This document shows positions 6,632 to 58,113 of a stretch of DNA of 64,000 nt, one piece after another. This DNA is from Epiperipatus broadwayi (taxonomy: Eukaryota; Animalia; Onychophora), in the NCBI GenBank assembly GCA_028023455.1, contig JAQFVV010000009.1, forward strand, positions 744,001 through 808,000, in the 5' to 3' direction. The position numbers and the translations under genes are program-made. Numbering within the stretch: position 1 is the first letter of the stretch; each line of letters begins with the position of its first letter. A model generated the notes under the pieces. That model was not told where the DNA came from. It saw nothing but the letters and a program-made list of their open reading frames with translations, and did not search any database.

Positions 6632-6830
6632 GTGAAGCATTAGATCCTAAGATCTAGATGCAGTGCTCTCAGATCCAAGGCTCCTCACTGATTTTTGCCA
6701 CAAGCTAGAAATTAATCTGGGGATATTGGATGAGTAGGTATTAGATAAGGGTTTATATACAAATCTTTCTGCATCCATTGATTATTCTGGCTTGCACTGA
6801 ATGGCACTACTGTATGAAGAGTTTTACCTC
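6632..6830 (-). repeat. Dispersed repeat family A, copy 2 (inverted relative to copy 1)
   Basis: Its reverse complement aligns to 11772-11972 over ~200 bp, including the TAGTGCCATTCAGT and ATCTTAGGATCTAATG blocks. Confidence 0.75.
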
Positions 6831-7109
6831 TATGTAAGAACAGGTTTGGTTTGTAAGAATGAAGTTGAGGCATTTGTCAGTTAACTAAATAAATATTTAT
6901 GTCTATGAATAAAATGTGATGGCAGGTACATACAATTGGAAAAATAATGTTGCTGAAGAGATGATTGCTATCAAAACAAAAAAAAAAAATTAAAGTTGGG
7001 TTAACATAAGTTTAACATGGTCTTGGTAAAAATAAAAAAGAATAAAGTAAAAAAAGACTTTTGAAAAGACTGAATATGAGACGAAAGCAGATCAACAAAG
7101 AATGTACGA

Positions 7110-7430
7110 TCTAGAGCCATTTACTATAAACTTGAGTAAACAATGGGCATAAGATTGACATAAAATATCCCTCTCTAAATTGACTTTTGTCTTCATCAGG
7201 GAAATCTAGGATTCACAACTAGAACTAACGCACACGTACTTAGTAGTCATATTTTATCTCTTTACCTTATTTAAGTTAATATGAAATATATAGCAATCCA
7301 AGTAAAGTAACCTGGATTTAAAATCTTATGACTTTTTTTTTAAATTTCAAAACTGGTTTGAAATTGAGGATTTTATAACACTATAGCATCTGCCTATTAA
7401 TTACTCAAGCTTACAATAGATGGCTCTAGA
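7110..7430. mobile_element. MITE, family B: ~40-bp terminal inverted repeats ending in TCTAGA
   Basis: TCTAGAGCCATTTACTATAAACTTGAGTAAACAATGGGCA (7110-7149) is the imperfect reverse complement of TGCCTATTAATTACTCAAGCTTACAATAGATGGCTCTAGA (7391-7430). No coding capacity. Confidence 0.75.
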
Positions 7431-8319
7431 GTAGAATGAATATAACTGCTATTGGAAGTATATGAGAAAACATAGAGGAGATCATGTGATATTATTATTG
7501 GCAATTTGTAAGAAAAAAAATTTTTGAAATTTTTTCAAATCACAAGCAGGTATAGAATTCCCCCCCCCAGTCCATTGATAGTTCATTGCCAATTAAGCAT
7601 GCTATTTTTAATACTATAGCTAGAGAATAAAAAATCCAACATTAATCTGGCTTATTCAAATGATTACTAATGCACAGATTGCAAAAACAAAAAATAGTAC
7701 AATGTGGCTTTCATCTGCGAGGAGTAATTGCCTTACTTGTGCTAAGTTAATTTTATTAAGGAGACAATTTGTATAAGATATATATATATGTCAGAATATT
7801 TAAATTTATATTTATTTTAAAGTAAATTCATAATACCTACTTATCCGGATCTATAAACATTAATACTAATTTATAGAGTATCCCATTATAGCTTGTTTTT
7901 TGGCAAAAATATTTTTTAATTTTCAATCTCTGGTTAAATTAGCATTCATACACTGTTGGTAGATTTTGTCATTATTTATTATATATACTCCTATGCATAG
8001 AGTATATAAAAGTGTGCGCTATGTTTTTGCTTTGTTTTTTTCTGCTTGAAAACTGATTTTTAATATCTGACCAAAAATATTTAAATAGATCAAGTGATTT
8101 TTCGTATTATGGTAAATAAGTTTTTATTAGGACTGTACAGTTGCATTATAAACTTTAACAATTACAGTATTTTTTCCCTATATACACAGAATAATAAATG
8201 GAGGCAAAATTGAATTTTCTTAGCAACGATGAAAACTATAAAAACATTAACTTAAAATGAAACTATAAAAAAAAAGTTTTTGTTATTTAACTTTAGAATG
8301 TTCCAATAACGCGTGTTAC

Positions 8320-8430
8320 TTAATGCATTACTACATTTCGAATGGTCGTAAATGAAATGGCAAAGATTCCTTACGAGTCTCTTAGTTTTCGTTACCATAG
8401 CAACAAGCAAAAGCCCAGCGACGTAAATAT
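8320..8430 (+). promoter_or_regulatory. CpG-retaining promoter region upstream of the MGC... exon
   Basis: Local cluster of CpGs (AACGCGTG, TTCGAATGGTCGTA, TTACGAG, TTCGTT, AGCGACGTA) in an otherwise CpG-depleted window, ~130-240 bp upstream of ATG 8564. Confidence 0.6.
8391..8404. promoter_or_regulatory. RFX X-box (GTTACCATAGCAAC)
   Basis: Near-palindromic match to the RFX consensus GTNRCCN0-3RGYAAC, ~160 bp upstream of the start codon, inside the CpG cluster. Confidence 0.7.
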
Positions 8431-8563
8431 TTATTGGTTCTTGGGTCAAAAAGTTGATTTTAAGTTTTGTAGACAACTACATGATTAAATAAAAAAAGTT
8501 TCATGTATGTTTTTATAAAACTTTAGAACTTTTATTATTTTGAATATAATATGTTAAATAATA

Positions 8564-8744
8564 ATGGGTTGTACGCCAAGCACTCTGAGGCCAAAATGCA
8601 ATTCAGTGACAGAAGATAATCTTCCTTCTAATCAAGTTCAAATCAGTTGTGGAAATCAAAAAATTATTGTTAGTCCCCCACCAGAAGATGGAATAGAAAA
8701 TTTATCAAAATGTGAAGATGTTGAAACCATCCCGGATACAAATA
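8564..8744 (+). CDS. First coding exon (60 codons + 1 nt) of a host gene with an N-terminal MGC lipidation motif; resembles the N-terminus of arthropod cAMP phosphodiesterase 8 (not proven)
   Basis: ATG GGT TGT ACG CCA AGC ACT CTG (MGCTPSTL...DTN) ends at a GTAAGA donor (8745, phase 1). The ORF-track extension beyond it is AT-rich intron. The PDE8 resemblance rests on recalled MGC(A/S)PS N-termini only; no REC, PAS or PDEase exon was found. Confidence 0.7.
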
Positions 8745-10210
8745 GTAAGATATATATATTTGTTATATATGTACCGTTTTATTTATAAATTTGTTTTATT
8801 ATCTGTATAGCAAAAATTAATTAAAAACTTTACATATCAAATATGTAAGATCTATTATTATCATAAACGATATTCTGATTATTGATATACATTTGTTTGA
8901 GATGGGTAATTAAACAAAATGATCTGCTACAACTGCCATTATATTAAATTGATTTCAGTTAAAAGCTTGTTTCTTAAATATATTCAACTCAAAATCTGAA
9001 ATATATAGTATGAATTTTTTTTAAAACGTGAAAATTGCTTTTACAAACTAATATATGAAGTATATAGCACCAAATTTTCAGTAAGAAAATTTCTCCCTAT
9101 TACTGAAGATATCAAGTATCCGGATTCAAAGTGACTGAAATACTTAATATGATTACTGAGTGCTACCTTACTTTTTAAACACTATATTAGTATATTTTAT
9201 TTAATTTAATATTAACCATAGTATATAGCTTCTATAACAAGAGATTCTACAATTTATTATTATTTATTTTTTAAAGTAATCTTAATTTCTAATCTTTATT
9301 CTTATTTATTTATTATACAAAATTTCAACAGGACATGGTTTCTTTTGTAGATATATATTTTGATTCTCCCATTGTTTGTCTGTGATTTTTACAGTTTACC
9401 TTGAACTAAAACCTGCATGAGAAATTTAGTCTTATATTTATGAAACAGATAAGCACATTGGTTGGACATATCCTTGAATCTATTGATATCTAATTATTTT
9501 GGGGGGAAATCAAATATATCTAGATAACTATGGTAAAAGAGATTTGTCTAATACCTTTCAGAAAGTCTAACATTTGTGCTATAATTCTATTATTAATGAA
9601 ATACTTGTAGTTGAGCTTCCTTAAAAAAAGATCTTGATTTGGAATGATAGTTAAGTAACAAATACCCCTAAAGAAAAGTTTAATTTGACATTAGAAAATT
9701 TGATAGAAACACTTTTTTTATAGTAGAGACAAATTTTTCAGCAGTAGAATATTAAAGTGTTAAGAAAATCACTATTAGATTGTTTAAAGTGTTTTTGAAC
9801 TTTTGTGTATAAAAAGCTTTATTGTTGTAGTAAAACTTAAAACAATATATTGTAATAATATATAAATTTAATGGATAAGATTAATTACCACAGATAATGA
9901 ATAAAAGCATTTTTATCACTCAATCATGATACCTTTTGACATATGTATTTTTAGAAGTAGCAATCTATTTTCTCAGCACAATTATCACATATATAAACAA
10001 ATTCAACTACAAAATAATGAACAATAATTGAATATATTTATCAACAATTCTGACCTAATATCCCACATTAAAGCATCATTTGCATCAGTTTTACCAACCA
10101 TTTTTCACATTAATACTTTAAACTCTTAAAATGGTTAAGTTATATTAAATTCAAGATTTGTTTAAACAATTATTGACATAAAATTGAAATAGAGTGATTC
10201 TACAATTCTA

Positions 10211-11771: not shown

Positions 11772-11972
11772 CAAAATCTCTATACAATAGTGCCATTCAG
11801 TACAAGCCTTAGTAATCAATGGATGCAAGAAAGTTTGTGCATAAAATTGCTATCTAGTGCCTACTTATACAATATCTCCAGAGTAGTTTCTAGCTTGTGG
11901 CTTCTATCAATGAGAAGCCTTGAATCTGAAAGCACTGCACCTAAATCTTAGGATCTAATGAAATCCTCCAGA
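11772..11972 (+). repeat. Dispersed repeat family A, copy 4
   Basis: Colinear with the reverse complement of 6632-6830. Confidence 0.75.
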
Positions 11973-12575: not shown

Positions 12576-15190
12576 GGGTAGTGAGTTTCCATTAGTTTTC
12601 ACAAACACAAATAATAAGTTAGGTTACTCAAATGCAAAACAGCATCATAGTGGAAACAGAGATAAAATTAATAAAATCTAAAAGGCCAACTTTCTCTATT
12701 GCATATAGATAGTCAGAGAATGGTAGTATATATGAAACTGATTTATCCACTGCTTTTGCCATAAATATGAACATTTTTTTAACAAAATAAAATTTAATTT
12801 TTCTAATTTATATTGAAGCTTCTAGCCAGTACAAACAATGTGTTTGAAATAATAATAGCCTAATATCAATTTATCAATTAGATATTGTATCACCATTAGT
12901 TTTTATCAACCTATTATTTGCAAAATGTATATGTAGATATTTATTTTTAATATATATATAATTAAGTGCTTAAGTACACTTTTTTTTTCTAACTTATACT
13001 AATTAAAGAATTCTCATTGCTATTGCTTATATATATATTGATTTAAACTTTTTATAGACGCTTGCTAATTTTTTAAAAAATGGTTGCTTTTTAGCTTTTA
13101 TTTAAAATTTTTCTTTTTTAAAATCTTTCAATGATAAAAGTGGGGGGGGGGGATCTTTGCAAAATTAAGATGAAGCACACAAAAAATAATTGTTTTTACT
13201 ACTTTAAAATGTTTTAATAATAGTTAATTGTATGCTGTATTTTCTATTTAAAAAAAAAAATCTGTTGACTCTTTTTTAATTCAGTCATTCAATAAATAGA
13301 AATTAAATAGATCATTAACAAATGTCCACACACACACTAAAATTTTTTGATTCTAAATACAATATATTTTTAAAAAAATTCTAATTAATATGAAAGTGTA
13401 TTATTGCACTCATTTTTATATTATAGCATATTATAGATGTATATGCATATTTTTATGTGTAAGTTAAAATATTTGGGTATTTTTATATACTGTATTTAAG
13501 AGTGCTTTAAATTCATGTATGTACACTTATAAGTTCTTATATAAAGGATTGTAAACAAGCAAAATATCCATTGCCTCACATCATACATTAAGGGTCTTTT
13601 TTGGAACAAAATATAGTAGGCATAAGAACTCCACTATTTTATGAACAAAAAAATTTTTGTAGAAAAACCATGTTATTGAATTATTGAGAAAATTTGTATT
13701 TGGAAAAACAAAAAACAAATGCATATTGCCTGCACTTATTTTATTTTACAAAAGTAATGAGTAAAATTTATTTTTATTGTTGAAATTCATTTTTTAATTA
13801 TCCTAAGTAATAACTTCATTTCAATTAATTTTATTAGTTTAAGGTCATTAGTTCTGTTGTTTTTCAACTTCTACATAATAGGTCTTAATAAAAGTATTGG
13901 AATCTATATCTATAAATGAAATATTAGTAGGAATTTTGTTGCTTCAAATTTATATCATTACCTGGGAAGCTTGAATCAGTGTTAATGATGGAAAATTCAA
14001 TCCATTATTAACATTTTAAAAATAAGTTTTATAAAATTAATAACATTTTATCCCACTCTAGTATTAAGATGGGTATGCAATCAGTGCACAAAATGATAAT
14101 TTAAATTTATAAACACCTATTTTATTTAAGAACATTTTTTTCAAAATTATCTCTATCCTAATGATACATTTCACCTGAACCACCTCCATGCATCTTAAAA
14201 TATGCTTAGACTTACATTTCCTATATTTTGGGGAATTTTAATGTCCAAAAATATTTGACATATAACTGATGCCAGGGCATTTGAAGTGACTGGTTTAGTA
14301 GAAATGATTACTGAAGTAGTATTACATTTTTTCTGATGTCTTTGGAAAAAGATATTCTTTGTAAAGTAGATGAATTGATAGAAAAAAAAGGTAATAATGT
14401 TATTAATGCATATGTGTTTAGGAATTCAAATTTCATACATGTAGTAAAAATTGATGAAAGTAAAATGGTAATATATTTAAAATAATTTAAAGTTTTATTT
14501 CAAAAATATGAAATGTAATATTTCCATTTTTACTGTAAAATTATCAAGTTTATTTTATGAAGTATAATAATATCTAAATTGTAAGTTCAAAGTTCATGTG
14601 GTAAAAATTACTATCTATAAAAAGTAGTTATATTTAATCTTTAAAATAATTTAATGTTATTTATCAAATGTACAAAATTTAATAATTCTATGTTTATGAT
14701 GTGATTATCAAAATTTACTTTGTCAGTTACATTAATATCTAAATTGCTTAAGATTAGTCATATGAAAAAAATGTTTGTAATTTATAATGAGATATCATAT
14801 TTTTAAGAATACTATTGAAGGAATATGATACTTATGAACATTTTTCACTCCCAAAAAGATTTTCAAAAAAAATTTTCAGTTTAAATGATATTACTTTTTT
14901 CTCTCTCTCTTTTTATCTCATGTTTTTAGAAATCATTATTTTTTTGATTTAGGTTTTTTTAGATTGTAACACTTTACAAAAAGATATTATTAAGTATAAA
15001 ACTTAGTCTCTGTCATAAAATACAACTTAATATCTTTAGAAAGTAATGAGATATCTTTGCTGGTAGAAGACAAAATGGTGGCACAGTATTATTATTACAA
15101 ATATTTAATGCTATAAAATTGTTTTTGGCAAAAGCTATATAGAAATTTTAACTATTTTCTTATCTCTATGAGTTTTCACCACTCATGATA

Positions 15191-47190: not shown

Positions 47191-50100
47191 CAAAAAGTCG
47201 GCTTTCATTTTTATATTTTCTTTGAATTTTTTAATTTTATGGAAATTGTAGTTTTATAGAATCACTGGCTTGGGATTGTTATATCAATGTGTTTTTGCTT
47301 AGTATCAATGCCATCGAGTGGCTGACACTATAGATCAGAACACTACCATAAATTTAAAAAAAATATTTGATTTAAAATAAGTACATAAAAAACTCTTAAT
47401 TTGGAATAAAAGAATATATTGAATAGCATTCACCTATAATGAATGGATAAAGAATTTTATGGCCACTCAGAATACCACCTAACATTCCTATTAAATCTTT
47501 CTTTAAGAATTTGATTAATAATATGCTGATGCATTGTGGTGAAACTTTTATGTATTAATTTGTAGGCTTTTTTATATATTCTAATTTGCAGACTATTCTA
47601 ATTTGGTATAAATAATTTCATTATTTATACTTATGATATCTAATGAAAAATAATCATCTGAATAAAATAAAATAATTTATTACAAAGACAGTCTTTTTTA
47701 AGAAATACAATTGGTTGAAGTTATTATTTGATAATTAAGAAAATGAATAATTTAATTCTTAGATGCTCTCTTTGGTTTTTTTTTTTTTTTTTAAAATTTT
47801 TTAAATTGTTGGTTTTTGTTGTTTTTTTTTTTTTAAAAATTATATTTTTTTAAAATTAAAAATTAACATCGACATGTAAATTTGAACAAAATGATTATTA
47901 TATTGAATTTCGTATGTTCATGTAATTTTAATGTTCAATATAAAGATAACTTCATAATAGGTTTTATAATATTAAGATTTCTGAACAATATGTGTAGATG
48001 ATGATAGAAAGACTATAAAACCAAAATTAACAATAAAAACATTTATTTTAACAATAAGTACGTAGAACAGATAACAACTTTGGAAATATACAATATCACA
48101 AAATGAATTATTTAAACATTCTACTGTATAATTCATTGCAGAGAAATGATTTTTTTAAAGTTTACAGATAAAATAAATTAAATTGACATATTAAAAATAA
48201 TAATGAAAATTATTATTCTTGTCTGATTAATGAAAATCTTTATCATTATTAATATTATAGCAAGAAGTTCTCCATTTTAACAATACAATCATACAATTCT
48301 GTTATTCCCAAATGAGTATATCTAAACCTGAAATAGGACTTTACCAATTCAGTGATTGAAAAAATACTGAAGGAAATGTGTATCAATTATTGAGGCCCAA
48401 AATTACAATTTTAATTTTTAAAATAACTTTATTAGTTTTACAGCCTATAATACTGCAAAGCACATCAAATAAACATACACATTAAGAACAATCAATAACC
48501 TACACTCAGAATATTAAAGAGTGCACAGAAGAGAAATATGACATTTCTCAGAATTAACTACAATATCAATTGCCAAAATATCATGGTGGTATCCACCTAT
48601 GACTTTATACAAAATAAATACTGATACAATACATATACAATTTAAAGATAAATAAAGCAATGAAAATAAGTGATGGCATGAACTCAAAAGGTAGCACCTA
48701 CTTTCAATGTAATAAATATGCTAGGACGTAGTCTCTAAACATAAGAATGATGACAATGAATCATCAAAATATAATAGGAGCAATAATAATTGCCATAAAC
48801 AAAGCATTTTATGCTTAAAATGAAACACAAAATATATAACTCACAGAATATATAATATGAAGAAAGACATGGCAACCATCTCTACAAATATACTAGCAAA
48901 ATAAATATCCATAAGAAAGAAAGAAAGCTACATCTCTTGGAAAAATACAAAAATAATGGCAAGTTAAAACAACAATAAAAGTAAGAGAGAGTTTAATGCC
49001 ACTATCTCTTAAATATTATAATTATTAACTGACGTGTAAAATCAATAATGTAAAAATTGTTCATCAAATCTGGCTTAATAAAAGCATGGCCTGAAATAAA
49101 CAATAAAAATATACAACATCTTCAATTTATCCAGCATTAACATATACATTCAAATAGATAAATAACTCATGATAAGAGACAACTAGCACTTTAAAATATA
49201 GCATTATAATTCAGCATACAAATAATTCATATAATCATAGACAAAATGCATAAAATAAAAATATATAAATTATAATAGCATAATACCAAAACATAAAATT
49301 ATGCCCAGTTTATTAAAATAATTATGAGTTTTTCATCCTGGATGATCTATCATTTAACAGAATACAGTTTCTGTAATTACCAATCTGCAAACACTAAAAT
49401 TTTCTTCTATTTGTTGAAACACAACAAATTTAAATTATTTGTACAGCATTCAGATATTGTCAATAATAGATTTGCTATATGATAGTGAGCACAAATAAAC
49501 TTTTCAAAAATACATATTAAAGACAAAATACACATCATTTATTTTTTGACATAATAGCTTTCTATTGTAGATCAGATTTTGAAACTAATAATAATGATAA
49601 TGATGAATTATAGTAGATTTATAATAAAGCAGGATAATTGCACAATAAACTTGAATTAAAAAAATTAGAAGCATTTATGTTTCATTCATATAGGATATGC
49701 CTTGTTCCAATTATTTAGTACAATCAATAATTTTAAAATAATAATGAGAGCTTTGAACAAATATCCCATTAATATTTTAGAATATTATTTTTTTTTAAAG
49801 TACTTTAGTCATATAATAATTTTTGGGAACAATAACTTAAGTCAATAATTTTAATTTCACTGACTTAGGAAATATCTTTTCTGGTACTAATCTAAAGTAG
49901 AATTAGGAAATATATATGACAATATTTTGTAAGTGAATAATTTCTGACCTGCTACTATGATAATGGTAAATAAATAAAAATGTCATTTCAAAAATAATAA
50001 CATTTGAAATAATTTACATTTTAAGAAATGAATGTTATCTTTTTTAAATTGATGTTAATAATAGCAAATGAATATTAGGATAATTTAAAAAGTCATTCAT

Positions 50101-50477
50101 TACTGATAGGTCTTTAAGATACATTGATGAGTAATTAGTAAATATCAATTTGATATCAATTAAATGTTTTCTATTTATATTATAAATAAATTTGGATAAG
50201 AAATGTATAAAATTCTATTATCACCAAACAGATTCTACTATTTGAAATTTAAAAGTCTATTCATTTTAAAAATAAAAAACTTGAAAGAAAACTATTAGAT
50301 ATGAAAAATTTTAAAACTAAAGTTTTTTTTTAAAATATACATATTTAAACACTTTAGAGTCCTTTGACAATCTTCTTATTCTCAGCATATAATATTTTGA
50401 GCAAAAGCATTTTTTACACAATTAAGAACTGCTTTAAAATAACAAAAATGCAGCTCTAATATTCTGGAATATAAAAC

Positions 50478-50491
50478 ATTAAACCAAATAA
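50478..50491 (+). repeat. Left copy of the 14-bp direct repeat (putative TSD) ATTAAACCAAATAA
   Basis: Identical to 55380-55393; abuts and overlaps the left arm terminus. Confidence 0.65.
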
Positions 50492-50632
50492 GATGTGATA
50501 TGTTGGACTATTTCCATCATTTATGAGTGAATGTTGAATGTGTAAAAAATTTTAAACTTTATCTAAACTTTTCAAATACAAACAACTTTGTTAGTAATAA
50601 CACACAAATAGACAATACAGGTTAGTAATTAC

Positions 50633-50677
50633 ACACAATGTTTCGAGTAGTATTATTCTCCACTCTTATTCAGGTGT
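50633..50677 (-). ncRNA. Degenerate minimal type I hammerhead ribozyme (left arm)
   Basis: The - strand reads ACAC CTGAATA A GAGTGG AGAATAATA CTACTC GAAA CATT GTGT. Core G8 is mutated and the stem III CpGs are decayed. Confidence 0.65.
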
Positions 50678-50697
50678 TGCTGGCCTATATGCACAGT

Positions 50698-50787
50698 GAC
50701 AATATTCGCTTAGAAGTTGAACTCACACCTTTAGATTCTTGAATATTGAATTTAAGACAAACACTCCACCAACTGAGCTATTCTGTC
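50698..50787 (-). other. tRNA-like A/B-box cassette (left arm)
   Basis: The - strand reads GACAGAA TAGCTCAGTTGGTGGAGTG...GTGAGTTCAACTTC..GCGAATATTGTC. Confidence 0.55.
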
Positions 50788-53700
50788 AAAGGCAACATAT
50801 AGTAGAAATTTGATGTATTTATGTATGAGGGTTGGTTCAAATCCTCCTGAGTCCTTCAATTTTTTTTAATGTAATTATTTTTTAGATTTTTTCCTAAGAG
50901 CAAGATTAATTAGAGGCTTCCATACATTGTGTATTGCCACACTGGGTTGATTTATAGGATTATTTACAATTGTCATATGAGCAGCTTCCTTGAATTTTCT
51001 TCTATGCATTTTTTACTCTTTATCCAATATCTTTGTATTTTCCCACTTAAGCATATAGTTATTAGTACATACATGATCTGCTGTGGTAGACACATCTGTT
51101 TTTCTCTTTTAACCATTAGTTTGTGTTTCTTCAATCGCTGTTCAACAGGCCGACAGGTCCAGTTTAAGCTTAGTAGAAGTAAGCAATCCTCAAAGTGTGG
51201 TATGGCTTTGGAATGCAAATCTAATGTTATATTGACTGCAGATTTTCTTTAATTTGTCCGCCATTCCTGGTATGTATGGATACACTACCATACCAATAAC
51301 TGTTTTTTTTTTTGGTGTCTCTTTGTGTTGTCTATTGAAGGTTTTCCTGATGACTGCTGATGGATAACCATTCTTCATAAGCATTTGTTCTTTTCTTTTT
51401 CCAAATCACTGGTTTCTGAACAAATCTCCTTTGCTCTGTTCCATAGAGATAGTACAATTCCTTGTTTAGTGCTTCTTGTATGATTGGATGTATATGCCAA
51501 GTATTTTCTAGTGTGTGTTGGTTTCCTGTATGCTGTTGTTTTTACTTTGCCTTGAGGGAGTCTTGTCACAAGAACATCCAAGAATGCCAATTTTTGTTCT
51601 TGTTCTGATTCCATTCTGAATTTAATTGTAGAAGATATGCTGTTAATGTGCTTCCAGAATGACTGTAATTTTTCCTCACCATGTGGCCATACCACAAATG
51701 TATCATCAACATATCGAAGCCACACTTTAGGTGGACATGGAGTAGCATTTATATCTGTGGTTTCAAGTTCTTCCATGTTAATGTTGCTGAGCAAGGGTGA
51801 CAGTGATGATCCCATGGCCATCCCTTGATTTTGTTGAAAGAATTCTGAGTTATATTGAAAGTATGTTGTTGTTACACAGAATGTTAATAATTCCATTATA
51901 CTATCAATAGGTAGAGCTGTTCTAGTTTGTAGAATATTATCATCATATAACCTTTCCTTACAATAGACAATGCCTCATCACATGGTACATTTGTAAACAG
52001 ACTGTCCACATCAAAGCTTACCAATATGTCAGTTCTTTCCATTTTCATGTTCCAGACTAATTCTACAAAGTGCTTAAAATCCCTGATGAAAGACTGTGTC
52101 CTATACGCCAATGGACTAAGAACTTCGAGAAGAAATCTTGACAAATTTTGACTTAGTGAAATTTCTAGAACCAACAATAGGTCTTAATGGAACATTGTCT
52201 TTATGGATTTTAGACAGTCCATACAGGTGAGGGATCTTGCTGAAATACGAAGTTAATTTTCTTTTCTCTGAATCACTGAAATACCTGCGATGCTTCCGGA
52301 GTAATGCTTGTAATTTTACCTCTGTATTTGGAATTGGATTTTTTGCTACTTTTTTGTATTTTCCTGCTGTGAGAAGACCTTGTATTTTATTATCATAATC
52401 AATTTTATTATCATAATCAGCTTTATCCATTACAACTGTAGTGTTACCTTTGTCAGCAGGAAGAATGATTATAGATGTATCTTGTTGGAGAGATTTAATA
52501 GTTTTCCTCTCATCACATGAAATATTCGACTTCCGCTTGTGCAATCGATGTCTTTCAAGTGTTCTTTTTACTCTCCAGTGTAACTCTACTGCTTATTCTA
52601 TAGTCAAGTTTTGGGTCACCTCATCAGTGGCATCCATTATATCCAATAGTGGAACAGTAGATGGTGTAATGTCAAAATTCAAATCTTTTTCAAGAACTGA
52701 TAATTCATAATCGGTAAGTTGTTTAGAACTAAGATTTTCCTCCAAGAGAGCTGAAAAAATTATTCAGAGAGCAAATGAGGCCTTACTGAGAGAAAGTATA
52801 AAGGTTCAGCGGTTTACCAAGTATCAAACATTGCAATCTATTAGAAATATTGGAATCGTTTCTACAAAACAAAGTGGAATCGTTTCTATAAAACAAAGTT
52901 ACAGGTGAAGATTTCTCAAGAATTTGTCAAGCAGTGAACAGATCATATTGTAAGTTACATGGAAGAATAAAAGAACTTAAGAAGAGGAAGCTTGAAAATC
53001 TACATAGGCAAGTCAAAAGTAATACTGCAACTAGTCTATCCTCGTCATCAGTGAAACATCTTAGTTCTAAACAACTTACCAATTGTGAATTATCAGTTCT
53101 TGAAAAAGGTCTGAATTTCACCATTACACCATCTACTGTTTTTCTATTGGATATAATGGCTGACACTGATGAGGTGACCCAAAACATGACTAGAGAAGAA
53201 GCAGCAGAGTTATACTGGAGAGTAAAAAGGACACTTGAAAGACATTGAGTGCACAAGCAGAAGTTGAACATTTCATGTGATGAGAGGAAATCTATTAAAC
53301 TCTCAAACAAGATACATCTATAATCATTCTTTCTGCTGACAGAGGTAACACTACAGTTGTAATGGATAAAACTGATTATGGTAACAAAATACAAGGTCTT
53401 CTCGCAGCAGGCCGATACAAAAAAGTAGCAAAAAATCCAATTCCAAATACAGAGGTAAAACTACAAGCATTACTCTGGAAGCATCGCAGGTATTTCAGTG
53501 ATACAGAGAAAAGAAAATTAACTGTATTTCAGCAAGATTCCTCACCTGTATGGACTGCCTAAAATCCATAAAGACAATGTTCCATTAAGAGCTATTGTTA
53601 GTTCTAGAAATTCATCATGTCAAAATTTGTCAAAATTTCTTCTCGAAGTTCTTAATCCATTGGCATATAGGACACAGTCTTTCATCAGGGATTATAAGCA

Positions 53701-54628
53701 CTTTGCAGAATTAGTCAGGAACATGAAAATGGAAAGAACTGACATATTGGTAAGCCTTGATGTGGAAAGTCTGTTTACAAATGTACCATGTGATGAGGCA
53801 TTGTCTATTGTAAGGAAAAGGTTATATGATGACAATAGTCTACAAACTAGAACAGCTCTACCTATTAATAGTATAATGGAATTATTAACATTCTGTGTAA
53901 CAACATACTTTCAATATAACTCAGAATTCTTTCAACAAAATCAAGGGATGGCCATGGGATCATCACTGTCACCCTTGCTCAGCAACATTTACATGGAAGA
54001 ACTTGAAACCACAGATATAAATACTACTCCATGTCCTCTTAAAGTGTGGCTTTGATATGTTGATGATACATTTGTGGTATGGCCACATGGTGAGGAAAAA
54101 TTACAGTCATTCTGGATGCACATTAACAACATATCTCCTTCAAATAAATTCACAATGGAATCAGAACAAGAACAAAAATTGGCATTCTTGGATGATCTTG
54201 TGACAAGACTCCCTCAGGGCAAAGAAAAAACAACAGTGTACAGGAAACCAACACACACTAGAAAATACTTGGCATATACATCCAATCATACAAGAAGCTC
54301 TAAACAAGGAATTGTACTATCACTATGGAACAGAGCAAAGGAGGTTTGTTCAGAAACCAGTGATTTGGAAAAAAAGATTCACATAGAACAAATGCTTATG
54401 AAGAATGGTTATCCATCAGCAGTCATCAGAAAAATCTTCAATAGACAACACAAAGAGACACCAAAAGAAAAAACAGTTATTGGTACGGTAGTGTATCCAT
54501 ACATACCAAGAATGGTGGACAAATTAAAGAAAATCTGCAGTTAATATAACATTAGAACTGCTTTCCAAACCACACTTCAAGGATTGCTTACTTTTACTAA
54601 GCCTAAACTGGAAATGCTGAAGAACAAA

Positions 54629-54955
54629 AACTGCATCTATGAAATTCCATGTGAATGTGGAAGGAAATACATTGGTGAGACCTGTCAACCTGTTGAACAG
54701 CGATTGAAGGTGCACAAACTAATGGTTAAAAGATAAAAAACAGATGTGTCTACCATAGCAGATCATGTATGTACTAATAACCATATGCTTAAGTGGGAAA
54801 ATACAAAGATATTGGATAAAGAGGAAAAAATGCATAGAAGAAAATTCAAGGAAGCTGCTCATATGACAATGGTAAATAATCCTATAAGTCAACCCAGTGT
54901 GGCAATACACAATGTATGGAAGCCTCTAATTAATCTTGCTCTTAGGAAAAAATAA
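54629..54955 (+). pseudogene. GIY-YIG endonuclease domain of the Penelope-like element
   Basis: CIY...YIG motif with CECG spacer, RLKVH, and downstream H/E residues (KFKEA). Confidence 0.9.
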
Positions 54956-55050
54956 AAATAATTAGATTTAAAAAAAAATTGAAGGACTCAGGAGAATTTG
55001 AACCAACCCTCATATATAAATATATCAAATTTTTACTATATGTTGCCTTT

Positions 55051-55140
55051 GACAGAATAGCTCAGTTGGTGGAGTGTTTGCCTTAAATTCAATATTCAAA
55101 AATCTAAAAGTGCAAGTTCAACTTCTAAGCAAATATTATC
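55051..55140 (+). other. tRNA-like A/B-box cassette (right arm)
   Basis: A box TAGCTCAGTTGG (55058-55069) with D-stem GCTC/GAGT, and B-box-like AGTTCAACTTC (55115-55125). The 3' half does not form a canonical cloverleaf. Confidence 0.55.
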
Positions 55141-55160
55141 ATTGTGCATATAGGCCAGCA

Positions 55161-55205
55161 ACACCTGAAGAAGAGTGGAGAATAATACTACTCGAAACAT
55201 TGTGT
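55161..55205 (+). ncRNA. Minimal type I hammerhead ribozyme (right arm), stem III CpG-decayed
   Basis: ACAC|CTGAAGA|A|GAGTGG-AGAATAATA-CTACTC|GAAA|CATT|GTGT. Intact CUGANGA and GAAA, 6-bp stem II, 4-bp stem I. ACATT is explained by two CpG transitions from ACGTC. Confidence 0.75.
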
Positions 55206-55379
55206 AATTACTAACCTGTATTGTCTATTTGTGTGTTATTACTAACAAAGTTGTTTGTATTTGAAAAGTTTAAATAAAGTTTAAAATTTTCTATATATTC
55301 AACATTCACTCATATATGATGGAAATAGTGCAACATATCACATCTTATAATATACCATCATTACAAACCTCAGACAAAT

Positions 55380-55393
55380 ATTAAACCAAATAA
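55380..55393 (+). repeat. Right copy of the 14-bp direct repeat (putative TSD)
   Basis: ATTAAACCAAATAA, 31 nt beyond the end of arm-to-arm homology (55348). Confidence 0.65.
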
Positions 55394-56572
55394 TAGTGTC
55401 TATTATTAATGAGAAAACAAGAATCATCTAAAGTTCTTATGCAATAATGATGGGTCACAGAGAATTCCCTCAAAGTATAAAATCTAAATAAAAATAACTA
55501 TTATTGTTAAATATTTAGTTAAAATTTCCATTATATTTTCCTACTATGTAGATTTCAAACTTTTTAGTAATTTCAGCTTAGAATTTCTGGCCTGGATGAA
55601 AATTAATTAGCAACACATATTTAACTTTAAGCAAACAAAAATTTATTATAAGTAATTAAACCGAATAATATTAAATATAATTAATTTTGCAAGCAATTTA
55701 TCAAGTAAATTTCTCCAGTAAAATTACACAAGTCCACATATGTGCATAAGACTTCCTCTATTTATATTGCTGATCATGTGAGTGATTTTGATAGATGAAA
55801 CTGACACTTGATCTTAAAATTCATTAAAGTTTAAAGATTAACTGGTATCCTGAATGACATAGCTAAAAATGAACTCATTTACATAATTGTCTAGATTTTT
55901 AATTAAATGTTGCATTTTAAGATAAATTATTTATAAAAGTAAAATTATTATAGTGAAAATACAATAAAACAATGCATAATATATTACATTATTTCATATA
56001 GAATATTAATTTACATTATTTTTTTAAAATAATTTTCTACACTACTTAAGTCTAAGTTCCAAGAATATTTTTTAAAGACTTTTAAAATAAAATATTTAAG
56101 AATAACTTTTAATATTACAACAAAAAAGTTAAAATAATCAAGTTCACCATGCACATTTATTACTGTTTTTTTTATTTGATACTAATAGCTTTTACTAATA
56201 AATTAATTCTTTATCTTATTTAATTATCTAACTTAATCATACTGGACTGAATTAATTTTTATTATAATTGGCATTAAGAAAAATATATTTTTGATTAGCA
56301 AACATATTACAATAATTTTAACTCTTAATATTTTTCCAGTATTAACTCATTAACATTTAGGTAAGGATATCCCTAAACTAAGCAATTCAAAGTTATCTAC
56401 AACTACATATGGGTTTAAAGCATTATAAAAAGATATTAGGATGTATTAACATTTAAATATTAAGTTCTAACAAATTGGCTTACTATAGAAATTAACTTAC
56501 TGAAAATGTTTTTTTTTAAATACTAATCAATTAGATAACTGGAGATTTAGCTTTACTGATAAACCTAAAGGT

Positions 56573-56575
<3 letters not shown>

Positions 56576-56644
<69 letters not shown>
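56576..56644. repeat. (TA)n microsatellite
   Basis: Read directly; one C interruption. Confidence 0.95.
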
Positions 56645-56647
<3 letters not shown>

Positions 56648-58113
56648 AAAAAATAAATATTCTGAAATATATCAGAACAAGGCTAAGGAAGCAACATTGT
56701 CTCATAAATAGCAATATTTCCTACTATGGAAGTTGGATGAGCAAAATTTAAAGGAAAACTTATAAAGATTGCCAAACTGTAAAGCTAGAGTAAGTACTGT
56801 TCACTGAATGAATAGCTTGCATATTTAAATACAATAAAATATAACAGCATGACTTGCTGGCCTATAAGTGCCTCATACATTTCAGCAACCACATATTATA
56901 AATAAATCATGAACCAATTGGTTTTCTCCACTTATATACTAATTATTTGGGCTTTATAAAATATATTGCATAAGTGTTGTACTTAGGTAACTAAAATAGA
57001 TAAATAAATATATTGATTCACAAATGGCTCTTTGGCAGTTTAAATTTATATTTACAATGGACTCATGAATTTTTAAGGTACCAGTGGTCCAGAAAATAAG
57101 AATTTTGCTTGGCAAAGAAAATAAATTCAGTAAATGAAGACTTGCTTAATGATAAAGTATGGTATGGGATTAAAATAAATTATCTTAATTGTAAAATAAA
57201 TTATTGAATAAAACAATTTTATAATGATTGATGCAATAGACAAATCAAAATACTTAGGTTAATAATAATAATATAAATTTATTGAAATACATTAACTTAT
57301 TGAGGTGGATAAAATAAAGATTATAATTCTAATTTACCAAAGCAATCTAATATCCTATCATATATTTTATAATTTATCTCCCCTCCTCTTTTTCTTTTAA
57401 GATCGCAATTGATATATATGATATACATTTAAATTATAAAGCATATCGTCATGAAAGGGTTAAACAAATTCTTTAAACAAATCAATAAAAGTTTTAATAT
57501 TTTTTTTAAAAAAATATTTCTCATATAGTTCAAATGATAATAAATGCCAAGTAAGTTATATTAATGGATAATAATAATAATAATAAACTTTAATAAATGT
57601 TTATCATTAAAATTATCATTGTGTTTTATTTTTACTTTTTAAAATAAAACTTATCTGACAGTGTTAATTTAAAAGAAGGTTTTTATTAACATCTGTTACC
57701 ACAATTCTGCATATATATGACTCCAGCTCATATTCCATTATTCAATTATATTTCTTTTGGTATCTTTTTTTATTAGCAAAAACACAAACATAGGGATCCA
57801 TAAGCAATTTGAATCATTAAATAATATTCAATTATTCCTATTGACATTACAATCCAAGATGAATTCAATTATTTTATCTCCATAGCAGTCAGCATAGCAT
57901 CTGTCATATTCATTTTATTTTAATCATGAAGATACCAAATGAAGATGAGGGAACTCATGCTTCTTCTCTCTAAGTTGTCTTATTCACAGTGTGTATTTCT
58001 TTGCTATATGCCTTGAATATATTTATAAAAAGTAAGATAAAAATTTCAAAATATAAAAAAAAGCATAAATTTTTAAGCAAAAGACAGTGTGTCTTCTCAC
58101 TAAAATCATTTCT

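Follow-up and report, generated by a model that had tools for sequence, protein, structure and literature searches.

The locus at positions 50478 to 55393 of the window (the whole 64-kb stretch of DNA that we analyzed) consists of two decayed, 5'-truncated copies of one Penelope-like retrotransposon (PLE), placed head to head within a single 14-bp target site duplication (TSD). We consider it probable, at roughly 65%, that both copies date back to a single old event, in which a canonical PLE with an endonuclease inserted at one staggered break and reverse transcription was primed from both 3'-OH ends. The initial annotation treated the dimer as an unusual structure, and this is not borne out: head-to-head PLE copies with a TSD and a 30-40 bp tail on one side only are a standard, already published insertion form (PMC3846280, PMC8557442). 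The locus is a clean but ordinary example of this architecture and contains nothing that is categorically new.

Coding content and kinship of the two copies

The left arm (50488-52739, reverse strand, 2252 nt) has its 3' end at 50488, which is the putative tail-less end position of the element, and the right copy (52740-55348, forward strand, 2609 nt) is the longer of the two. The first part of the right copy, 52740-53052, is private to it, and homology to the left arm covers the remainder, 53053-55348. A blastn comparison of 50488-52739 with 53053-55348 returned two blocks with 92-94% identity (E = 0), and in a global alignment the arms overlap by 2.25 kb and are 94.6% identical over 2216 aligned columns, with 15 indels, one of them 66-68 nt long. 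The element 3' ends point outward in both arms, and there is no poly(A) at either outer end; the initial description of 5'-truncated copies with outward 3' ends and about 2.3 kb of shared 3' sequence therefore stands. Raw arm-to-arm divergence is 5.4% (K2P 0.057), and stops, frameshifts, and indels are found in both copies. In the left arm, a deletion of 66-68 nt at 51158/51159 eliminates the GIY-YIG motif, and 18 nt are duplicated at 52384-52419. The window holds no family copies besides the two arms and the locus no direct pLTR; ARAGORN detected no tRNA between 50300 and 55600.

Judged by its coding content, the element appears to be a canonical, endonuclease-bearing (EN+) PLE, because an RT domain is present in both arms and a GIY-YIG domain lies C-terminal to it in the right copy, an architecture that a passage of PMC8557442 gives as specific to PLEs. 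The RT fragments were detected with PF00078 at 53627-54055 on the forward strand in the right copy (E = 1.7e-8) and at 51375-51896 on the reverse strand in the left arm (E = 1.3e-8). The GIY-YIG endonuclease motif region (CIYEIPCECGRKYIGET) of the right copy is located at 54545-54733 on the forward strand, downstream of the RT domain and in the same reading direction; its 63-aa fragment matched PF01541 with E = 5e-4 and 20.7 bits, just below the gathering score of 22.6. Together, these domains support the original assignment to Penelope-like elements. The best relatives of the RT in the searched protein collection were animal RT proteins with ~50% identity; as none of them exceeded 57%, the search yielded no same-family loci from elsewhere. 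A hammerhead core-like CUGAAGA...helix...CGAAAC motif is present at 55165-55198, and a similar one occurs in a related PLE locus (L032, see below); Rfam searches of 49500-56500 (E <= 1) and of the 361 nt at 55040-55400 (E <= 10) revealed no hammerhead and no other credible family.

Their variants suggest that the arms are sisters of equal age. We compared the locus with the family majority at the 40 best-supported of 303 variant sites, a selection that is biased for this reason, and 30 of the sites shown were comparable in both arms. At these 30 sites, the departures from the majority comprise 16 minority letters shared by the two arms, seven private to the left arm, and seven private to the right. 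Several of the shared letters, for example those at 54015, 54096, 54241, and 54260, are found in no more than 1-4% of the family depth. Summed contig depth climbs toward both outer (3') ends of the dimer, as expected given that the family is very abundant and its copies are mostly 5'-truncated.

Outer boundaries, tail, and junction

The 14-mer ATTAAACCAAATAA is found twice in the window, at 50478-50491 and 55380-55393. Both occurrences are at the outer ends of the dimer, in agreement with the initial annotation, which had the repeat enclosing the whole unit. Based on 100,000 random position pairs in the same AT-rich window, the chance of a match of at least 14 nt between comparable end windows is ~1.6e-4. 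The final four nucleotides of the left copy of the repeat (ATAA) are also the first four of the left arm, and the true duplication is therefore 10-14 bp long. The insertion is in very A+T-rich DNA: GC content of the flanks is ~20%, and the flank that follows the tail, which is the right copy of the repeat, opens with ATT. An 18-mer repeat with one mismatch (50474/55376) was considered as a longer duplication and dropped, the four extra nucleotides on the right being the end of the family tail. We found no paralogous empty site within the 64-kb window, and none of the listed short-read contigs bridges an empty site at the locus.

The two outer ends are not alike. On the left, the 14-mer overlaps the arm by 4 nt, whereas on the right 31 nt (55349-55379, forward strand, 74% A+C) separate it from the end of arm homology. 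The arms thus end at different positions of the element, 31 nt apart, the left without a tail and the right with one; the initial annotation placed the 14-bp repeats correctly and overlooked this asymmetry. The same tail is present in other copies of the family, whose contigs continue through ...TCAGACAAAT before they part into varied A+T-rich flanks, and rough depth ratios suggest that about one-third of the copies in organism A and about one-tenth of those in organism B carry it. The right-end extension matches the known optional PLE tail of 30-40 bp, which is usually found at one end only. When the 3' end and tail were folded as RNA, the A+C-rich start region showed no significant stem-loop relative to shuffled sequences (z = 0.17). 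A metagenome scan with an 18-nt pattern from the 3' end returned 30 loci, none of which was homologous to the element by blastn and which are therefore chance matches.

Arm homology ends at 52739/52740, and there is neither a palindrome nor microhomology at this head-to-head junction. The direct fusion without a spacer noted initially agrees with this, homology ending one base to the left of the 52740/52741 that had been given. We assign the 313 nt at 52740-53052 to the longer right copy rather than to a spacer, because an open reading frame (52934-53248) crosses their boundary and their depth is at family level: summed contig depth is 2-3.5e4 here, like that of the adjacent element, and 4e2-1.4e3 in the flanks. 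A filler of a few bases may be present at the junction itself. One of the three junction-spanning 31-mers sampled was present in short-read runs, a weak indication with three words only; it was found in contigs from three organism A runs and two organism B samples, and no listed short-read contig bridges 52739/52740. The contig layout also contains many "skip" joints between the arms, the short sides of which measure 21-28 nt; we did not count these as evidence for other dimers.

Origin of the head-to-head structure

According to the reading that we favor, the GIY-YIG endonuclease of the element would have cut both strands of the target ~14 bp apart, and each free 3'-OH would have primed reverse transcription of element RNA. 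Synthesis from a distal start site would have produced the right copy with its tail, and synthesis from a proximal start site, 31 nt upstream, the left copy without one. The two cDNAs would have grown toward one another and been joined at 52739/52740, in the simplest case by template jumps or end joining; each would then have served as the template for the other strand, and both copies would have decayed after insertion. Dual priming is reasonable, and it is supported by the TSD, the shared rare variants, the equal numbers of private changes, and the different end positions, as well as by in-vitro work on a purified PLE protein (PMC11167929, see below). The initial annotation had already proposed a single event with priming from both 3'-OH ends, and this part of its proposal agrees with the TSD, the sister arms, and their unlike ends. 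Its statement that the cDNAs were joined at their 5' ends does not hold, however, as it is the 3' ends of the cDNAs that meet, and these represent the 5' ends of the element sequence. The overlap of the arms excludes, as template, only a single one-unit RNA used once. The separate RNAs of the initial annotation may have served, and so may one tandem transcript of several units or one RNA copied twice.

Several other routes to this structure can be weighed against dual priming. In one of them, which we regard as unlikely, the left arm was made by self-copying: a single cDNA, primed at the right end, would have formed a fold-back 313 nt from its 3' end and used itself as the template. Self-priming has been proposed for PLEs, namely those of rotifers (PMC3846280); moreover, the strand geometry permits it, with the longer right copy made first, and the rare variants in common and the equal number of private changes agree with arms that started out identical. 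However, a fold-back should continue through the tail into an inverted version of the primer DNA, whereas the left arm ends 31 nt short, lacks the tail, and adjoins a directly repeated copy of the target. At the junction, the arms are offset by 313 nt, no palindrome or pairing is seen at the turn, and the outer ends are not identical. It is generally known that long palindromes lack stability and frequently lose their central part, which would fit a symmetric palindrome or other structure that was remodeled later, either by a central deletion of ~313 nt in one arm together with loss of the left tail or through an inverted duplication after insertion. The arms do already differ by 15 indels, including the one of 66-68 nt. 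Nevertheless, we find such remodeling quite improbable: loss of the left tail would have needed a deletion that reached exactly to the boundary between element and target and spared the 14-mer, and an inverted duplication at the DNA level would not leave the 14-mer directly repeated at the two outer ends.

In a family of such extreme abundance, neighboring insertions are common, and a second copy could have inserted at the 5' end of a copy already in place, with the match of the 14-mers being coincidental. The low chance of such a match, the lack of separate duplications for either arm, the rare variants common to both arms, and the equal counts of private changes all speak against two independent insertions and make them very improbable. 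Least probable of all, by a little, is an assembly or sequencing fold-back artifact. Inverted structures of PLEs are known to trouble assemblies, and no bridging read was seen; but technical fold-backs have identical, symmetric arms, whereas the present arms show 5.4% divergence, 15 indels, and a 313-nt offset. The recurrence of one junction-spanning 31-mer across the runs and samples of both organisms weakly points the same way.

We tentatively suggest, as an idea that is rather less likely to be right than wrong, that the combination of one tailed and one tail-less end may be systematic, with the two protomers of a dimeric PLE particle, one per DNA strand, using different RT start sites. If so, head-to-head insertions would always carry exactly one tail, and the "tail at one end only," for which an explanation has long been lacking, would be linked to target-primed reverse transcription on both strands in vivo.

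Comparison with known systems

The closest known counterparts are the inverted-pLTR PLEs of Adineta vaga, for example Pen2a_Av (PMC3846280), and the general scheme of Craig et al. 2021 (PMC8557442, Fig. 2). As in the A. vaga elements, an inverted 5'-truncated copy adjoins the 5' end of another, one short TSD surrounds the unit, and only one of the ends has a tail (31 bp in A. vaga and 31 nt at the present locus). In contrast to them, the locus has no direct pLTR or partial tandem, its members measure 2.25 and 2.6 kb where A. vaga has a short inverted pLTR, and its TSD is 14 bp rather than 8-10 bp long.

In vitro, a purified PLE protein, Poseidon PAc from Anolis carolinensis, cuts both DNA strands and extends them (Frangieh et al. 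2024, PMC11167929). The tail is delimited by two adjacent internal RT start sites, and the protein prefers 5'-ATT-3' in A+T-rich DNA; the authors themselves do not trace the inverted structure back to extension of both strands (PMC11167929). By analogy, the locus reads as a genomic footprint of a reaction of this type: it shares with the Poseidon PAc reaction an A+T-rich target with ATT and an A+C-rich start region. It differs from Poseidon PAc in that no significant stem-loop is predicted.

The product of L1-type twin priming is of another kind. In that process, which is said to go back to Ostertag and Kazazian in 2001, a second primer reportedly anneals internally on the same RNA and yields non-overlapping segments with one poly(A) 3' end. 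The initial annotation set the dimer apart from L1 twin priming, and the 2.25-kb overlap of the arms bears this out; with both outer ends being element 3' ends and without poly(A), we ruled out such a product.

The value of the locus is modest: every boundary (the TSD, the tail-less end, the tailed end, and the asymmetric junction) can be read, which makes it a textbook-quality natural PLE example, and for the RT fragment of its family the searched protein collection offers no relative exceeding 57% protein identity. Because the family is extremely abundant, the genome is suited to a family-wide survey, which could ask whether cleavage and extension of both strands, as observed in vitro in 2024, are behind the head-to-head forms and one-sided tails known since the mid-2000s.

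The same layout is present at two related PLE loci in other public assemblies, one from the termite Cryptotermes secundus (L031, 13184-13774) and the other from an ENA assembly (L032/L033, 6981-9505). They represent families other than the present one, their neighboring RT genes having ~45-50% protein identity to the RT described here, and their arms are much shorter than those described here. In the termite locus, 255-nt arms are placed head to head and point outward with their 3' ends; one copy of a 12-bp duplication (ATATTTATGTTA) directly adjoins the arm that lacks a tail, and a second copy of ATATTTATGTTA follows a 41-nt tail on the opposite side. In L032, the arms, again head to head with outward 3' ends, measure ~0.5 kb versus 2 kb, and there is a 34-nt tail on one side only; the duplication is ambiguous because the target is a tandem repeat. 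Both L031 and L032 have hammerhead-like CUGANGA...GAAAC motifs near the 3' end.

Two Penelope-like copies arranged head to head

Self-comparison of positions 49000-57000 revealed a single long inverted repeat, interrupted by small indels alone, with arms at 50488-52739 (minus) and 53053-55348 (plus). In a global alignment, the arms share 94.6% identity over 2216 aligned columns, with a K2P distance of 0.057; 15 indels separate them, and the mismatches comprise 81 transitions and 39 transversions. CpG to TpG/CpA changes make up 12 of the 120 mismatches, with merely 7-15 CpGs left per arm, and these mismatches fit in-place decay. By coding sense, the right arm reads along the plus strand and the left arm against it, which places the 5' ends at the centre and both 3' ends on the outside, in agreement with the initial annotation. 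Neither copy can be active any longer: several stops and frameshifts interrupt them. In the left arm, a loss of 66-68 nt at 51158/51159 has taken out precisely the GIY-YIG motif, and positions 52384-52419 hold an 18-nt duplication.

Open reading frame (ORF) fragments of both arms match the reverse transcriptase (RT) model PF00078 (E = 1.3e-8 and 1.7e-8). In a protein database search, the closest relatives of the RT fragment were uncharacterised RT proteins from termites, beetles, damselflies, and sea urchins, mostly at about 50% identity and at no more than 57% over most of the query; these protein homologues led to no copy of the same family. Canonical Penelope-like elements (PLEs) are defined by an RT with a GIY-YIG endonuclease C-terminal to it (PMC8557442). 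On the downstream side of its RT, the right copy encodes ...CIYEIPCECGRKYIGET...RLKVHK..., and a 63-aa fragment of this copy matches PF01541 (GIY-YIG) with E = 5e-4 and 20.7 bits, slightly below the gathering score of 22.6. An ATGATG at 55316 begins the reading frame MMEIVQHITSY..., which reaches the tail-less end after 11 codons and the tail end after 21. This parallels a rotifer PLE in which the first 12 aa of the ORF, or 22 aa with the tail, are encoded in the pLTR, and suggests that the ORF of the present family may start within the 3'/pLTR region.

Central junction and outer ends

Arm homology ends at 52739|52740 (...GATTTTC|CTCCAAG...); the head-to-head junction proposed initially therefore stands, one base away from the 52740/52741 first assigned to it. 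The following 313 nt (52740-53052) belong to the right copy, extending it further in the 5' direction, and are not a spacer, because the ORF at 52934-53248 continues in frame across the 53052/53053 boundary and the contig depth is element-like: across 52592-53327, contigs sum to a depth of 1.7-3.5e4 (first run) and up to 4.9e4 (second run), as in the adjoining arm sequence, and 4e2-1.4e3 in the flanks. Within this extension, which the left arm lacks, positions 52837-52900 hold about 2.5 tandem 24-nt units (TCTA..A.A...TGGAATCGTT). There is no palindrome or pairing potential at the turn, and the junction may include a filler of a few bases. Among the contigs listed, none bridges the junction and none crosses an empty site. 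We sampled three words from a 60-nt junction-only query in short-read data from organisms A and B, two organisms whose contigs carry this PLE family. One of the three was found, in three organism A runs and two organism B samples; this supports the junction weakly, because a word with just 1-2 bases across the junction lacks specificity.

The 14-mer ATTAAACCAAATAA occurs just twice in the 64-kb window, as a direct repeat at 50478-50491 and 55380-55393, bearing out the earlier claim that it encloses the whole unit. A direct match of at least 14 nt between end windows of this size has a chance of 1.6e-4 (100,000 random position pairs from the window). That it is still intact is unsurprising, because the 5.4% arm divergence gives 0.946^14, or about 0.46. 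The left 14-mer and the left arm overlap by 4 nt (ATAA). The initial description placed the 14-mers correctly at both ends but overlooked an asymmetry: on the right, 31 nt (AATATACCATCATTACAAACCTCAGACAAAT, 55349-55379, 74% A+C) lie between the 14-mer and the point where arm homology ends. This tail is element sequence rather than target: around 55370, contigs of other copies, in four runs spanning two organisms, continue through ...TCAGACAAAT before splitting into varied A+T-rich flanks. By a rough depth calculation, about 36% of organism A copies and about 10% of organism B copies would have the tail, values good to an order of magnitude only, since per-contig word depth is flat. The flanks (50200-50487 and 55394-55700) are moderately repeated, with several overlapping contigs at about 90% identity; thus, the pair may be nested within a different, older repeat, and the genome might contain a paralogous empty site at some other location.

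Origin of the pair

Positions at which the family majority differs from the locus were taken from a comparison of contigs with the locus, and each was mapped to the opposite arm for the best-supported 40 of 303 sites. At 16 of the 30 comparable sites the arms have a minority letter in common, and those at 54015, 54096, 54241, and 54260 amount to about 0.1-4% of family depth. Private minority letters number 7 in each arm, and at most of these sites the opposite arm agrees with nearly all other contigs. Thus, on these best-supported sites, the arms are sister copies of one rare source lineage with equal private change since, rather than members of different subfamilies or ages, which by the initial description would have refuted a single event.

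We consider dual target-primed reverse transcription at one break the probable origin (probability roughly 0.65). The target duplication points to one staggered break, which would have yielded the 14 bp. Reverse transcription would then have been initiated independently on RNA at each of two start sites, tailed and tail-less; the template could have been two RNA molecules, a single RNA copied twice, or a single tandem transcript of several units. The cDNAs would have met at their 3' ends, which are the 5' ends of the element, and not at their own 5' ends as originally worded, and would most simply have been joined by mutual template jumps or end joining. Dual priming itself was a reasonable proposal, with published in vitro backing (PMC11167929) and tailed and tail-less ends as predicted.

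The occurrence of one tailed and one tail-less end is our main reason for preferring this over fold-back, in which a single cDNA copied itself to give the left arm. Sister arms are compatible with either, and the geometry of a fold-back requires the right copy to have come first, with copying starting 313 nt inside its own 3' end. Such copying should run off the template end into the tail and then inverted primer DNA; the left arm instead halts at the tail-less position, followed by the direct target copy, and we regard fold-back as unlikely. Later remodelling of a symmetric palindrome seems less probable still, and two independent insertions are highly improbable for arms that are sisters within one target duplication. 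An assembly artefact is scarcely credible: technical fold-backs have identical, symmetric arms, and those of the locus are neither.

The structure is a known, standard form of PLE insertion. In rotifers, Arkhipova and colleagues described inserts completed by an adjacent inverted pLTR with a 9-bp target duplication around them, head-to-head being the commonest inverted arrangement (PMC3846280), and PLE insertions often have a 30-40 bp tail at one end only (PMC8557442). Frangieh et al. (2024) reported that a full-length purified PLE protein cleaves and extends top and bottom strands, that two adjacent internal sites start reverse transcription, the tail being the sequence between them, and that cleavage favours 5'-ATT-3' in A+T-rich DNA, with initiation within an A+C-rich region (PMC11167929). 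The locus is alike in each respect: its tailed and tail-less ends lie 31 nt apart, its tail is A+C-rich, and the target flank after the tail begins with ATT in surrounding DNA of about 20% GC (vs 33-36% within the element). What is new is an instance from another PLE family, sharpened by the 31-nt tail; the architecture itself was already known.

Distant relatives and the shared 3' region

DNA around two distant homologues in other public assemblies contains inverted PLE pairs of the same layout. In Cryptotermes secundus (NEVH01002704.1, 13184-13774), directly downstream of a PLE-type RT gene model, two 255-nt arms, 98% complementary, lie head to head with 17 nt between them, each with a canonical hammerhead motif, CUGAUGA...GAAAC. 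The 12-bp target duplication ATATTTATGTTA has one copy at 13184-13195, next to the left arm, and the other at 13763-13774, with a 41-nt extension (tail) on the right side only. In ENA ERZ18545498, a 0.5-kb inverted copy (6981-7477) is followed by an RT-bearing copy of about 2 kb ending at 9471 and by 34 nt more on the right, after which the tandem-repeat target continues (structure 6981-9505). It occurs on two contigs that differ in sequence, atg000073l and ptg000013l, one of which has an extra 1035-aa RT gene downstream; these are probably two haplotypes, one with a further insertion.

The right arm contains a hammerhead-like core (CUGAAGA-A-GAGUGG...CUACUC-GAAAC, 55165-55198) about 150 nt from the element 3' end; its counterpart in the left arm (50640-50673, minus) reads CUGAAUA, with the G8 position altered. 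No Rfam hammerhead family matched over 49500-56500 (E <= 1) or 55040-55400 (E <= 10). The ERZ18545498 relative has a similar CUGAAGAAGACCC..GGGUCGAAAC motif in the same relative place (about 9370-9395). A tRNA-like box-A string, ATAGCTCAGTTGGTGGAG, is present in the 3' region of both arms (55057-55074; 50764-50781, minus), and ARAGORN called no tRNA in 50300-55600. Over the last ~180 nt (55168-55351), summed contig depth is 5-9x that of the preceding bin; loose contig ends are numerous at 55152 and 55248, and in numerous contig joints about 140-150 nt between 55107 and 55260 are skipped. In organisms A and B, the terminal ~100-200 nt of the PLE seem to be shared with a far commoner short element, perhaps a non-autonomous or retrozyme-like one.

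Elsewhere in the window, an unrelated repeat of about 190 nt occurs in two inverted copies (6638-6824 and 11773-11960), about 82% alike and 4.9 kb apart, with no ORF of at least 90 aa between them; each is probably a short interspersed copy in its own right. At 56572-56672, 1.2 kb to the right of the PLE insertion, there is a (TA)n microsatellite of about 70 nt.
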